Positions 8,140 to 21,455 of a DNA stretch of 64,000 nucleotides are shown piece after piece. Position 1 is the stretch's first letter; each line of letters opens with the position of its first letter. Source of the DNA: Pocillopora damicornis (lineage: Eukaryota). The DNA lies in assembly GCF_003704095.1 (NCBI RefSeq), contig NW_020846006.1, positions 186,001 through 250,000 of the forward strand. The letters are read 5' to 3'. The position numbers were made by a program, and so were the translations under genes. The notes below the pieces were generated by a model. That model searched no databases. It was not told the origin of the DNA and saw only the letters and a program-made list of their open reading frames with translations.

Positions 8140-9146
8140 TCAAGAAATGTAGAGTTGATTTTTTGATCCATATCTGTTCACATGAATGGGAATAGGAACA
8201 ACAAGTTTAGGAGCGTGAAGCTTTCTGTTTCCATGAGCTTGAGGTCCACCGAGAGTCCTTACTCTCTTCCATTTCGCTCGTCTGTTCTGAAACCAAATTT
8301 TCACTTGAACCTCGCTGAGTTTTAAAGTTCTTGCAATGTGTGATCTCTCTTCCAGTGAAAGGTACTTTTTGGTGTGAAATTCTCGTTCAAGTTCTAACAG
8401 TTGTTGGCTTGTAAAAGCCGTTCTTTTCCGTCTGGATTTGGTTCCTCCCTCGGAGTCTGAATTTTGGTCTTCTTGTTCGTCCTCATCACTCCCAGTTGGT
8501 GAATTTGGATGAGCTTTGCCACTAAAGCCTAGTAGAGGAAAATGGGCATCAAATAGATAATAAAAGCAGTACATTTAACTTAATCAGTAATTGTCAATTT
8601 CCTAACACAGAAGCTTTATTGACCACGCAGTAAACGAGGAAAGAACCGGCACATGAACATCATGGGAGGACCAAAAATTCCATAAGGTCTTTAAGAACAT
8701 AGCTTTTATAATTAGAATAAATGCAGTAAAAATTTCCTTTAGATAAATGTTGAATAACGCTGGATACCTCTCCTAAAAATAAAGTTGTTAAGAGCAATTC
8801 CAGCGTGAAGCAGTTTCTAATACATTCCTCTCTGGATATCGAATCCAATTACTACAGCAACATATAGAACAGAACACTCACTTGTTGGCGAGGAGGGGAA
8901 ATGATCCATTACGTTCTCTCTACGAAAATGTTTGTCCAATTTTTCTTCCTCCATTTGAAATACAGAGACTGTCCTGTCCGAATAGATCCCATCGCCCCGC
9001 GGTGTGAGCTCAACCAAATTCTGCATGGCACTCAGTGGTCCGCGGCTTAAAATTCCTTGGCTGTCATAATTTTCTTCCCCTGTTTGCTTCGGAGGATCTC
9101 TTCTGGAAATAATCGATTCAATAGAGAAAGAAATCGAATTTTGCAT
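8140..9146 (-). CDS. GBX: Gbx/unplugged homeobox transcription factor, 2 exons, ~217 aa
   Basis: Exon 1 9146-8882 (ATG; eh1 FSIESII; donor GTGAGT, phase 1); exon 2 8528-8140 (acceptor CTAG, phase 1). Homeodomain [59 protein letters not shown] plus the Gbx-specific C-terminal [13 protein letters not shown]. Confidence 0.95.
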
Positions 9147-9194
9147 TGTAAGTCGCCCACGTCTTCTTTGTGTTAATACAAGAGCGAACACACA

Positions 9195-9335
9195 TTAATG
9201 ACTGGTGGAGTTCGTATTGTTTCTTATCGGATTACGCTCTCTCTGCTAGCAGACGTTACTAATTACAGGGGCTGAGATTTTTTTACGTCAGCCGGACACG
9301 TCCCATTGGTTGTTAAGTTGTCAACTGACAGGCGT
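9195..9335 (-). promoter_or_regulatory. Putative Gbx proximal promoter
   Basis: CpG-containing region just upstream of the Gbx ATG with a CCAAT box (ATTGG ~9306), CRE-like TTACGTCA (~9283), TAATTA (~9260) and TGACAG (~9326). Confidence 0.4.
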
Positions 9336-17400: not shown

Positions 17401-19111
17401 TGCTTTTACTTGGCAGAGAGATTTTAAATTCCATTCTATCAACTGCAAACAATTACTAAAACAATAGGAGGTGTGTCACCGCAGGGAAATGTACACAGTA
17501 CTGGTTCGAGAATAACTAGAAATGAAATACAAACCAGACGTAAGGAACTGGTTTGTTTTTAACCTTACCTTGACAATGATCTAAAAACGTTCGTGCTGAT
17601 TGTCACAAAGAATGACACGCCCACATGTTCCCGTCATCGGTACGGCAGACACCGCTAGTTGATGTTAAGTCCTTTATACCCCAATATCAGATGTCTTTTT
17701 TCTCATATCCTGTAGTCTAGAGGGAAGTTGCGCCTGAAGATAACTCAATTTAAGTTGTCTTTTCTCAAACATGAGAATAACATTGGATAAGTAGCACAAT
17801 ACTGGAATTTTGCTCTATAGTATTTATAATCAGTTTAATATTTCTAAAAGTTTAAATACTATACATCCGACATTCCTGATTTTCTATAGTTTTGGTTTTC
17901 GGTTGAGACAAATTTATCAAATGGTGGCGCGGTGTCACCTCAGACACTCAATCGTGGTGGGTATGGCATGTACCATCTCTTGTTTTTATGTCTGCACGTC
18001 TGAGGCGCCCGTGTATTAGGAAGAACAACGCGTTTTGTATGTGTGGTGTTTTTTTTCCGCAGGTTCCTACTCGTTGCAGTTCGATCAAGAGATCATTCGG
18101 ATCCTGTGCTTACGACAAGGGGCTCCTTAACGTGAACCCGAGAGGAAACTATATCCTCTGGCTTTTTTGAAATTTTGTAAGAGCAAATTGGAATATTAGC
18201 AACTAAAAGTGACTCCACTCTGATTTTCAAAGTCATTCTCAACCCCTCCCCAGGCACTTAGTAAAATTTTCTGGAGGATATCGTTCAAATTACTACGATC
18301 AAAGGGTGGTCGTGATACTCAGAGTTCATGCTGAGAACTAAACAAGATGCCGCTGCTCCAAAACGGCGGGGAAGCCGTGAGCCGAACGGTACTTTGCATT
18401 ATCTTAAGTATTGTCATAAATTTCATTGTGCATTTATCCATCGTAACCCTTCCTGCTTTTTAGCGCTTTGTTTTCTTTGGAAAATGATCTTAGTCAAATA
18501 AAATAAGGTTGACCTACAATTGTGGACTTAAATGACTGACTATTCGTTTCCGAATTGGATCGCACAATGTTATGTGCGCAATCTAAGATTGAAAAATTAC
18601 AGATTAATCTGTCTCTGCATCGAATACCTTTTCAAATGCTTTGCAAATTATGATTTCCCGTCCGGAAAGTGACAGAAATTGAAGTTTAACTGTGCTACTG
18701 TTTCCTCGCAAAGATGTGCCCCTCAGCACGAAAGTGTGGCAATGCTAGTTTGTATTTATTTCTGTCTTAAGTCGCACCACTTAACTTATACCACTTTTCT
18801 CCCTCTTACTAAAACTAGTCATTTCTCACTGCGCTGTGTGACTTCTAAAGTTTGTCCCAACAAGCGATGAAAGACTTTTCCGACGAAAGCACGGGAGTTC
18901 AAAGGGAGTGTAAATGTCTGCTTCCTGACCGCAACCTATTTACAGTATCTCAACGAGCCAATTAAGTTACAGTACTCCAGAGTCATGATTAGCCGGTTAT
19001 CAAAGCGCGAGACTGGAGTCTCCAGACTAACTTATATTGGTGCCAAGCAGCCGAGAAGTTGACTGCTTGTAAGAAATTTACCTGGGAAGGGACATAATCA
19101 GTTGAGGCAAT

Positions 19112-21455
19112 ATGTCTTCTAGAGTGAAATATGGCTCGGCTTTTTCCCCTGTCATCCCTTCTAAATCCGTCTTAAATCATCCTTTCTCCATTAAAAACCT
19201 GCTCAGTCTCTGCGACGACCGACGAGGTGAAGACAACGAACATAATAAAAGATTCGCCAATCTTTCCCCTGCCAGCGAAAACACGGCAAGGAAAACACGC
19301 CCCGTGAAAGAGGGCACAGGTTTGAGTGCAGCACAAGGTAACTTCGATCTAAACAGTGTCTGGCCGGCATGGGTTTATGCTACGAGATATTCGAGGCACG
19401 GTATCCCTCCAGGTTAGTTATAATATAAATTAGATTAAAAGATATGACGAAGCCTTGAAGCTACGTTATACATAAGTAAAGCGGTGCAACATTTTCTACC
19501 TTAGCAGACTCCCATCGGAACTGCAATAAATCATGTATGACCCGTCTCAACGTGATACATGAAATAGCACCTTCTTGGAGAGCATAACTTTTCACTTCAT
19601 AAACAGCTATCCAGCGTGCGATTTCTGAACTTGAATTAAATTTTAAAAAAACATATCTGTGAAACGTATTCTTTCCCCAATTTATGTTTCAATCGTGCAA
19701 AGGTTAACTTCTTAGGGTAATGCTCTTTTAAATAAATACGCTAAAAAGGGCTTGCACATCTAATACACCAAACAATAATACTCGCAATGAAATATAAATT
19801 TATGTGGCTTGCAAGCCTTTAGCTTAGGCCGTAACATTTTGTATAATGTTTGCGTCAGAATTTCAAAATACACACCAAAGGAGGTGAACAATCAGAGATG
19901 TGTCTTTAAATATAATACTAACATTAGGCCAATATCGTATAATAATTTTTTTTGAATGGTGAAGTGTAACATTTATCTATTCGAAGAGGAACTCCGTGAA
20001 CCACTACATATTCAGTGGGTAATTAGAAGGGGTGTTTACCGACCTTTTAATTGCTCGGAATCAGAACAGGAAAAGACATAAAACGAAGTTTCATCGGATT
20101 TTACAGCTGCCGGTTTCCCATGATCTGATTCTTTGGCGTTGTTTCTGTAGACATTGTTTGGGAGCTTTTCAAAGTGGAAAAAAACCGTCGACTGCATTAG
20201 TCATCACAATTGTTTAGATGTATCAAAGAAGTTGCGAAAACGACCTCAAAGGTGCTAACTAAGTTAGCCAAACATGATTAGCGATGGCTAAAATTATCAA
20301 TCACTTTCGGAAATATTTGGAAAGTTCAAACTGATTTCCTGAAGCGTAAAATTGAAGCTTAAGTGGACCGAATATGAGAGGACGCTAGCGGATGTGCTAT
20401 ATTTATTGGCTAAGAGTAACCTATAAGCATTTCCGCTGGACTCGTGTGTTCCCCACGCACACGCATACGAACAATACGTGCAATGGTAAACATCTCCACT
20501 TTAATAAAAATACAATGGAACTTCGGAAGCTGGCACTTTTGGCACAATCTGACGTGCAATTTACTGACGTGCCTGAATAAACGGAATCCTTTCAAAATGC
20601 ATTCAATTCCTCTGATTCACAGAAACCATTGTGATATTGATAGATTTGTCAGACTGAAAAAATGATATTTTACCGTGACCTGTGATACAGGTGGAAATTG
20701 ACATTGTTATATCTCACCAAGAGATTCTGGAAAATTTACGTCGGTAGCCGATGAGGAACACACATTACACTCAAGCACTGATTTAACAGTTCTGGTTCGT
20801 TGTCAGGCTTTGGAAAAAACTGCGACGGACATGAAGGTCATGAAGAGCAAAAAAAATGCAAGGAAAAGTTATGCTGATAACTCCCCAATCATATATCTGA
20901 TTTCTCAGTAAATGGGTACTTTCAGCTCTGAATGCGTCCTCTCCACGAACTGGAGAAATGCAGAAAATTGAGTTTGCCAACTCCTATGTTCATTTGCAGT
21001 AACCTGCACATATTGCAGTCTTTTGGGCTTAGTTGGTTGTTACTTTTATTTTTCTTTTTTAAGCCCAAATATTAACTATTACGGTTAAAGACCTATTATG
21101 TTATCAACTGATTTAACTTACAGCAAACTATGCAAACCCACGAAGGCCTCGCAAACCTATCAAGAGACAGAAGCAACGGCCTCTTTTCTCGCCAGAACAG
21201 CTCCAAAAACTCGAAGAAGAGTTTGTCAACGAAAAATACATCTCCAAGTCTCGACGGTGTAAACTAGCCGCAGAAATAAGCCTTACTGAAGCGCAAGTCA
21301 GAACATGGTTTCAAAACAGACGAACAAGATGGCGTAAAGAAGTACATGAAGAGGACGACGATCCCAGCTGGACCACGCACACTGGAATGGCAAAATATGA
21401 CGCTAGTGTCTTAACTGCTAACTGTATGATAGTACGAGGATATTGCTCATCTTGA
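19112..21455 (+). CDS. Divergent ANTP-class homeobox protein with eh1 and Engrailed EH2 motif (engrailed-like), 2 exons, ~210 aa
   Basis: Exon 1 19112-19412 (eh1 FSIKNLL 19184-19204; WPAWVYATRYS 19361-19393; donor AG|GTTAGT, phase 1). Exon 2 21124-21455 (acceptor TTACAG, phase 1) encodes ANYANPRRPRKPIK-RQKQRPLFSPEQLQKLEEEFVNEKYISKSRRCKLAAEISLTEAQVRTWFQNRRTRWRKEV-HEEDDDPSW...*. AATAAA at 21573. The gene model is secure; the family assignment is uncertain. Confidence 0.9.

Follow-up and report, generated by a model that had tools for sequence, protein, structure and literature searches.

A Gbx gene and its divergently transcribed, probable Abox-type neighbor in the coral Pocillopora damicornis

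Introduction

We analyzed a 64,000-nucleotide stretch of DNA from the coral Pocillopora damicornis (contig NW_020846006.1, positions 186,001 to 250,000, of assembly GCF_003704095.1). This stretch is referred to here as the window, and its coordinates are used unless another sequence is named. Between positions 8140 and 21455, it carries two homeobox genes transcribed divergently: a Gbx gene on the minus strand and, on the plus strand, a gene that we call gene B and that partly resembles engrailed (En). A third homeobox gene, gene C, lies before the start of the window. An earlier note on this DNA, written from the sequence alone, described the first two as a head-to-head Gbx and engrailed-like pair and proposed that they are a relic of the EHGbox (En-Mnx-Gbx) cluster. 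Our analysis points to a different family, Abox, for the partner of Gbx.

The EHGbox genes EN2, MNX1, and GBX1 lie together on human 7q36. Abox, the homeobox "absent from Olfactores", is a Super-Hox family of the ANTP class that is absent from vertebrates and tunicates and is represented in Drosophila by CG34031. The shape of the extended-Hox (Super-Hox/EHGbox) neighborhood before the cnidarian-bilaterian split is still debated. According to a preprint of March 2023, which has P. damicornis among the species studied, no convincing engrailed orthologue has been reported outside the bilaterians (bioRxiv 10.1101/2023.03.14.532566). The same work regards Abox as the family closest to engrailed, reports it beside En in Saccoglossus and Lytechinus, and counts as Abox orthologues the genes with EH2 from Acropora digitifera and further anthozoans. 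It further describes Abox as duplicated in Anthozoa, the other copies carrying E28, and reports that ABOX and GBX adjoin in cnidarians; its figure of genomic arrangements shows Acropora digitifera.

Results

Exon structure of the divergent pair

A six-frame scan of positions 8140-21455 found exactly two homeodomains. The minus-strand one is of Gbx type, with helix 3 at 8295-8278, and the plus-strand one is divergent, with helix 3 at 21306-21323. The corresponding exons and introns are as follows (a slash marks the exon boundary).

9146-8882, minus strand: Gbx exon 1, coding sequence with an N-terminal eh1-like motif, FSIESII; translation equal to the first 88 aa of P0012
8529-8881, minus strand: Gbx intron, phase 1; donor AA/GTGAGT, acceptor CTACTAG/
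8528-8140, minus strand: Gbx exon 2, with the homeodomain and the stop codon at 8142-8140; translation equal to the last 128 aa of P0012
19112-19412, plus strand: gene B exon 1, with eh1 (FSIKNLL) and EH2 (WPAWVYATRYS); donor CAG/GTTAGT, phase 1; translation of 100 aa
19413-21123, plus strand: gene B intron, phase 1, 1711 nt, seen in RNA contigs; contains a conserved block at 20204-20368 (70-76%)
21124-21455, plus strand: gene B exon 2, with the RRPRKP arm, the homeodomain, the IVRGYC end, and the stop codon at 21453-21455; acceptor ..ACAG/; translation of 109 aa

Exons were searched singly, and the identical database proteins P0012 (Gbx) and P0155 (gene B) stood in as full-length sequences. 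The two-exon Gbx model reproduces exactly both ends of P0012, a 217-aa P. damicornis protein (XP_027048354, "GBX-2-like"). Likewise, the gene B exon translations equal both ends of P0155, a 210-aa protein of P. verrucosa named "engrailed-1-B-like", with one split codon (A) between them. Counted across a 10-N assembly gap, the distance from ATG to ATG is 19112-9146 = 9,966 bp. The gene models and the RNA-supported splice of gene B thus bear out the earlier description of two divergent homeobox genes with start codons 9,966 bp apart.

The identity of Gbx is plain from its second exon, which matches Pfam Homeodomain at E=2e-24. Among the 120 best matches listed, those from outside Cnidaria were all named Gbx, unplugged, or CHOX-7, or had uninformative names (hypothetical, unnamed). 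Support for the Gbx clade in the maximum-likelihood (ML) trees described below was 88 in the large tree and 94.7/99 in the 50-row analysis.

Splicing and expression of gene B

The gene B splice, a 1711-nt skip with GT..AG ends, was found in RNA contigs from three of the four runs (X1, X5, and X13), which come from three studies. A scan of JGI contigs with P0155 recovered the same splice in two metatranscriptome cDNAs of another coral. The RNA contigs show that transcripts begin by 18994-19070 and extend 0.7-0.8 kb beyond 21600. The two exons of gene B are thus expressed and encode a transcription factor. Its Groucho-binding eh1 motif and its Pbx-binding, engrailed-type EH2 motif are kept in the coral orthologues and, together with the ANTP-class homeodomain, suggest that the product is most likely a Groucho/Pbx-assisted repressor.

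Lower-depth contigs of the RNA runs also cover the gene B intron (19392-21141) and may stem from carried-over DNA or from pre-mRNA before splicing. A 215-bp skip at 19638-19854, seen in one run, does not end in splice sites and is probably an allelic deletion. At the other end of the gene, a C-terminal (I/V)(I/V)RGYC motif (21420-21452) is shared by every gene B orthologue, in Nematostella as well as in corals (P0150, P0161, P0167). Ends of the RGYC type were absent from the bilaterian Abox proteins that we examined.

Gene B compared with engrailed

Gene B shares several traits with engrailed proteins: an eh1 motif, a near-identical EH2 (WPAWVY.TRYS), and similar helices 1 and 2. The first residue of its EH2 lies 31 residues before the homeodomain, which is the modal spacing in 30 En proteins. 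The eh1 and EH2 motifs and this spacing explain the automatic annotation as engrailed-like, and the NCBI automatic names within the gene B group are indeed "engrailed-1-B-like" and "engrailed-2-A-like". Engrailed clusters are among the best ESM Atlas matches, and in single-domain comparison with the PDB, Clawless/Tlx and Barhl2 match best and outrank En.

The homeodomain itself differs from that of engrailed. Gene B has E17, E19, K28, R30, R52, and the helix WFQNRRTR, whereas En has K/R17, E28, K52, and WFQNKRAK. Gene B lacks the K52/E28/K17 signature and the EH5 region (Engrail_1_C_sig) of En, and the ML trees place En in a separate clade. A Pfam scan of gene B exon 2 at E<=1 matched Homeodomain (E=6e-20), with Homeobox_KN and DUF2986 below their cut-offs, and did not find Engrail_1_C_sig (PF10525)/EH5. 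Since EH2 occurs in Abox, Msx, Nk1, and Msxlx too (bioRxiv 10.1101/2023.03.14.532566), this motif is not diagnostic of En.

Gene B compared with Abox

An HMMER search with P0155 retrieved coral and sea anemone orthologues, a second anthozoan group that includes gene C (C group; KKQRPLFS arm, E28), a bilaterian family with a KPRQAYS arm, and En. Members of the KPRQAYS family came from echinoderms, molluscs, an annelid, chelicerates, a crustacean, and a nematode, never from vertebrates, and their NCBI automatic names were inconsistent (MSX-1-like, HMX2-like, engrailed-2-like). We identify this family as Abox because its taxon range and its E17/R52, E19/K30 signature fit the published descriptions (bioRxiv 10.1101/2023.03.14.532566; PMC10726417). 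The taxon range is consistent with the Abox family listing of the latter, and the former gives the Abox homeodomain signature as an E17-R52 pair with E19/[RK]30. Both coral genes carry it, gene B as E17, E19, R30, and R52, and gene C as E17, E19, K30, and R52.

The likeness of gene B to Abox extends beyond these residues. Abox proteins have an N-terminal eh1 and, some 30 residues ahead of the homeodomain, a motif that contains W and resembles EH2. In gene B, as in bilaterian Abox, RRPRKP directly precedes the homeodomain. In profile-profile alignment (hhalign), the B group against Abox scored 196.8 (E=8e-30) over 96 columns that span EH2 and the whole homeodomain without a gap; the B group against En scored 168.1, with two 6-residue gaps. 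There are also differences. Bilaterian Abox has a KPRQAYS arm and V28, gene B a KQRPLFS arm and K28. The EH2 of gene B is far better kept than that of most bilaterian Abox proteins, and the IVRGYC type of end was not seen in bilaterian Abox.

The ML tree comprised 58 Pocillopora ANTP-type homeodomains with En, Abox, Tlx, Not, and Gbx references, and branch support was taken from the Shimodaira-Hasegawa-like approximate likelihood ratio test (SH-aLRT). The B and C groups were monophyletic (SH-aLRT 97; 96.8/93 in a 50-row LG+G4 analysis) and joined bilaterian Abox, their nearest clade, at 86 (89.4/81 in the 50-row analysis). En formed a clade of its own at 99-100. The next to join B, C, and Abox were En (99) and two Pocillopora Nedx-like genes, with support 81. 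Among the Pocillopora homeodomains in the tree, none besides the B and C types grouped with En or Abox.

Other identities suggested by single matches were rejected. Dbx, Hlx, or Rough had come up through a YISKSRR stretch and an Atlas "rough" match, and these families stand elsewhere in the Pocillopora-wide tree. Tlx and Barh, from the best PDB matches, resemble gene B mainly in the recognition helix and also stand elsewhere in the tree.

Sequence comparison thus suggests, with moderate support, that gene B is an Abox-type gene rather than an engrailed orthologue; its orthology with Abox is what we infer from trees and profiles. The earlier naming of the neighbor of Gbx as an engrailed-like gene probably does not fit its family, given the E17/K28/R52 homeodomain without Engrail_1_C_sig and the trees and profiles that favor Abox.

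Gene C and the local gene order

A whole-genome scan with PF00046 placed three homeodomains on the 280-kb contig that carries the pair (C2641): gene C, Gbx, and gene B.

L011:7466-7805 and 9318-9697 (C2641:173,466-175,697), plus strand: gene C exons 1 and 2

Gene C lies 12.5-10.3 kb before the start of the window, convergent with Gbx and 18.4 kb from the Gbx stop codon. It encodes an eh1 motif (FSIKNIL), a decayed EH2 (YPAWICNTSF), and a C-group homeodomain with E28. Genes B and C each have a phase-1 intron in the same place, 17-18 residues past the first residue of EH2. Judged from their sequences, the two genes are paralogues.

Three homeobox genes therefore lie within about 34 kb, in the order Abox-C (plus), Gbx (minus), Abox-B (plus), followed by a GATAD1-like gene (plus). 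Between the three genes, there is no open reading frame (ORF) of at least 90-110 aa; smaller ORFs were scanned against Pfam in the Gbx-gene B interval only. With 142 homeodomain matches in a genome of 234 Mb and 4,393 contigs, about 0.04 neighbors would be expected within +/-35 kb, against the two observed, which makes chance clustering unlikely. A further C-group homeodomain lies on another scaffold (C134:38498-38668; L065), and Pocillopora would thus have at least three Abox-type genes. Abox is duplicated in anthozoans, into the B group, the C group, and this further copy on C134.

25587-28079, plus strand: first exons of the GATAD1-like zinc-finger gene; Cx2Cx17Cx2C finger at 25615-25689, weak Pfam GATA match

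The GATAD1-like gene begins 4.1 kb downstream of gene B and matches its Orbicella counterpart (L010) in four blocks at 82-89%. The Orbicella gene follows its gene B orthologue at 4.2 kb, on the same strand. A same-strand neighbor at the same distance indicates conserved microsynteny.

The interval between Gbx and gene B

The earlier note had described only repeat remnants between the two genes. Two short repeats are indeed there, but the rest is single-copy and holds blocks conserved among corals. These blocks came from a blastn comparison of the interval with five other coral loci; the features of the interval and its borders are listed below.

9147-19111: interval between Gbx and gene B, mostly single-copy in the genome
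13788-13797: intergenic assembly gap of 10 N with no coding sequence over it; the nearest ATGs lie 4.6 and 5.3 kb away
12720-12905: short interspersed repeat with at least 40 genomic copies at 77-86% identity on many contigs (own-genome search)
13093-13208: second short interspersed repeat (own-genome search)
7441-7611, minus strand: conserved block 0.5-0.7 kb past the Gbx stop, likely 3' untranslated region (UTR); 81% identity to the Gbx-centered coral loci L094/L095
10386-10605: conserved noncoding block 1.2-1.5 kb upstream of the Gbx ATG; 75% over 220 bp, in the same relative place in L094/L095
16458-16530: conserved noncoding block 2.6 kb upstream of gene B; 84% to Orbicella L010, 79% to L004
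17341-17466: conserved noncoding block 1.7 kb upstream of gene B; 75-77% in L010, L005, L004, and L093
18540-18678: conserved noncoding block 0.45 kb upstream of gene B; 75-82% in four other coral loci
18852-19111, plus strand: promoter-proximal region and 5'UTR of gene B, conserved in four corals in one stretch with exon 1; RNA contigs start at 18994-19070

The ten longest ORFs of 9147-19111 gave no Pfam match, and the interval contains no Rfam family and no tandem repeat. In appearance, the repeat at 12720-12905 resembles a short interspersed nuclear element or a miniature inverted-repeat transposable element. Because the gap is 4.6 and 5.3 kb from the ATGs, it affects no reading frame, and only the exact distance is uncertain. 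The conserved noncoding blocks cluster about 2.7 kb or nearer to gene B and about 1.5 kb or nearer to Gbx. On the Gbx side, a block at 8876-9338, comprising exon 1 and 190 bp upstream, is 76% conserved at the Gbx locus of another coral. In Orbicella, the conserved noncoding blocks extend over a stretch about twice as long, and the flanks that were fetched there therefore probably ended short of Gbx. An interval so short, with its few conserved noncoding blocks, is candidate ground for enhancer sharing between Gbx and gene B.

Linkage in other cnidarians

Orthologues of gene B occur in corals and sea anemones, with eh1, EH2, and the RGYC end conserved. The 10-kb flanks of such orthologues in other species (L001-L005, L007, L008, and L010) did not extend as far as Gbx. 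On Nematostella OW051986.1, Gbx lies at 7,308,782-7,309,832 (minus strand) and the gene B orthologue, P0167 (automatically named "HMX3"), at about 11,802,399-11,804,750 (plus strand). They keep the divergent orientation over a distance of 4.49 Mb, with unrelated genes on their flanks. For P0254, the C-type paralogue in Nematostella, the recorded contig is equal in size to that of Gbx. Published work places Nematostella Gbx on chromosome 2 with Hox, Evx, Mnx, Rough, and Mox and mentions neither Abox nor engrailed (PMC10719294).

Record sizes give indirect co-location in three further cases: Gbx and the gene B orthologue of Oculina, both on chromosome records of 33,308,145 bp; the coral sequences P0015 (Gbx) and P0162 (gene B exon 1), both on contig records of 550,198 bp; and P0023 (Gbx) and P0229 (C group), both on contig records of 1,386,867 bp. 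The JGI metagenome contigs matching P0155 were all short (at most 17 kb), and none carried Gbx.

Discussion

A coral Gbx gene lies within 10-20 kb of two Abox-type genes, one of which has a nearly perfect engrailed EH2 and RNA support. We consider it likely that this trio represents an Abox-type neighborhood whose Gbx-Abox pairing is a retained piece of an ancient extended-Hox linkage. Genes B and C would be anthozoan paralogues of the Abox family, and the juxtaposition of Gbx and Abox would be a remnant of the extended-Hox (Super-Hox/EHGbox) linkage group, kept tight in scleractinian corals and probably dispersed to a megabase distance on one chromosome in Nematostella. The linkage is probably ancestral, and Gbx and gene B may share enhancers, in line with the shared regulatory interval that the earlier note had suggested. 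The locus supports the descent of En and Abox from one EH2-bearing, Gbx-linked ancestral gene.

The anthozoan ABOX-GBX pair of the preprint (bioRxiv 10.1101/2023.03.14.532566) is of the same kind, an EH2-bearing Abox orthologue adjoining Gbx. The EHGbox/Super-Hox arrangement is similar in that Gbx is linked to an En-related gene, and the Nematostella Abox-type genes are on the chromosome record of Gbx. It differs in that the partner in Pocillopora is Abox and not En, that the distance is of kilobases rather than megabases, and that Mnx is not on the 280-kb scaffold of Gbx but stands elsewhere with Hox, Evx, and Rough. As for the ancient, tight En-Gbx linkage that the earlier note had suggested, linkage of Gbx with an En-related gene is upheld; the partner is most likely Abox, however, and the two are 4.49 Mb apart in Nematostella, which means that close pairing is no general trait of cnidarians. 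The note had also recommended locating Mnx, Nedx, and Dlx on the same scaffold, and all three lie on other scaffolds of this fragmented assembly.

Several observations weigh against the reading that we prefer. Upstream of the gene B orthologue, the first 10 kb contained no Gbx in Orbicella or in the sea anemones Actinia and Nematostella, and neither did the first 16.5 kb on one coral contig (L093); no gene B exon 1 was found within 9.4 kb upstream of Gbx at L094/L095. Mnx (C2640) and Nedx-Dlx-Nedx (C2721) are not with Gbx on C2641, in an assembly whose scaffolds are fragmented and short. Support for the Abox clade is moderate. The "bilaterian Abox" set was recognized from its signature and the taxa in which it occurs rather than from curated names, and the families sampled in the tree are those among the best matches together with Pocillopora's own homeodomains. 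The moderate support, the wide separation in Nematostella, the absence of nearby Gbx in both anemones and on the coral contig, and the different genes flanking gene B (GATAD1-like in coral vs. Per1 and BCDHK in Nematostella) would fit another account, in which B and C form an anthozoan-specific ANTP family without a one-to-one bilaterian counterpart and the coral adjacency to Gbx is secondary and lineage-specific. We regard that account as unlikely. The RRPRKP arm, EH2, and eh1 are collinear with those of bilaterian Abox, and in Nematostella, both genes are on one chromosome record, the extended-Hox chromosome to judge by its Gbx, in the same divergent orientation. The preprint, moreover, reports the adjacency in Acropora, across the deepest scleractinian split, and Abox beside En in Saccoglossus and Lytechinus (bioRxiv 10.1101/2023.03.14.532566). 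Assembly error appears far-fetched as an explanation, namely that the adjacency was created by a scaffold join at the N gap. The 10-N gap, of uncertain exact length, does lie between the genes, and no read or contig was placed over it. Yet it is small and inside one scaffold, the blocks on both sides keep the expected upstream order of each gene, the gene B exon 1 and Gbx orthologues of another coral are both on the 550,198-bp long-read contig records, and the same pairing was reported independently in Acropora (bioRxiv 10.1101/2023.03.14.532566).

The likeness to engrailed raises the question of whether gene B is a divergent but true cnidarian engrailed orthologue and the pair a direct En-Gbx (EHGbox) relic. 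Its EH2, nearly that of En, its eh1, the 31-residue spacing, the automatic names, and the engrailed clusters of the ESM Atlas all speak in its favor. Approximately unbiased (AU) tests, run on the 60-residue homeodomain in the 50-row subset under LG+G4, add to the points against the Abox reading: at 5%, they reject neither B+C as sister to En (delta lnL 3.1, p=0.41-0.44) nor gene B alone with En (delta lnL 15.6, p=0.12-0.13). We nevertheless find engrailed orthology improbable, as gene B has E17/K28/R52 where En has K/R17/E28/K52, Engrail_1_C_sig was not found, En stands apart in the trees at 99-100, and joining gene B alone to En costs 15.6 log-likelihood units. The Abox profile alignment is better and free of gaps, the EH2 motif is not specific to En, and Tlx/Clawless and Barhl2 precede En among the PDB matches. 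A variant of the idea, to which we give very little credence, is that En and Abox were duplicated before the cnidarian-bilaterian split, gene C being the cnidarian engrailed pro-orthologue and gene B the Abox orthologue. Gene C has En-like traits in E28 and an En-like helix 2, with a decayed EH2, and an AU test of (C+En),(B+Abox) did not reject this topology at 5% (delta lnL 22.8, p=0.065). If it were true, the sisterhood of B and C in the homeodomain trees would come from concerted evolution of close neighbors, and corals would keep the Abox-Gbx-En core of the EHGbox.

That Gbx and Abox are paired is already known at preprint level, and our tests agree independently with that report (bioRxiv 10.1101/2023.03.14.532566). 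Because its core claim is in the 2023 preprint, the locus is of value as confirmation, name correction, and added detail rather than as discovery. What is added here are the exact Pocillopora coordinates, the RNA-supported splicing, a second Abox-like gene flanking Gbx, the conserved noncoding blocks, the 4.49-Mb separation in Nematostella, and the correction of the gene name to Abox-type. The earlier interpretation is partly supported, broadly right about a relic of extended-Hox linkage and most likely wrong on the gene family. With the gene probably misnamed and the idea already in the preprint, that first reading was largely right in spirit yet not new.

Other homeobox groups and neighboring genes

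Other homeobox groups were seen in the same assembly. The 708-kb scaffold C2640 carries a Hox-Evx-Rough-Mnx array at 281324-512780, made up of six Hox-like homeodomains together with Evx (353.6 kb), Rough (502.7 kb), and Mnx (512.6 kb); these families were assigned by eye from 60-aa homeodomains. On C2721, a Nedx-like gene, Dlx, and a second Nedx-like gene lie within 26 kb (371912-398118), and the Nedx-like pair adjoins the En/Abox group in the tree. Four clustered homeodomains with an unusual recognition helix, IRNWFQNRRY, lie at C21:151415-175486. The far end of the window has ordinary neighbors, namely ORFs for MEIOC (48666-49634, plus strand), a PP2C phosphatase (56137-58824, minus strand), and an acyl-CoA dehydrogenase (61102-62777, minus strand).

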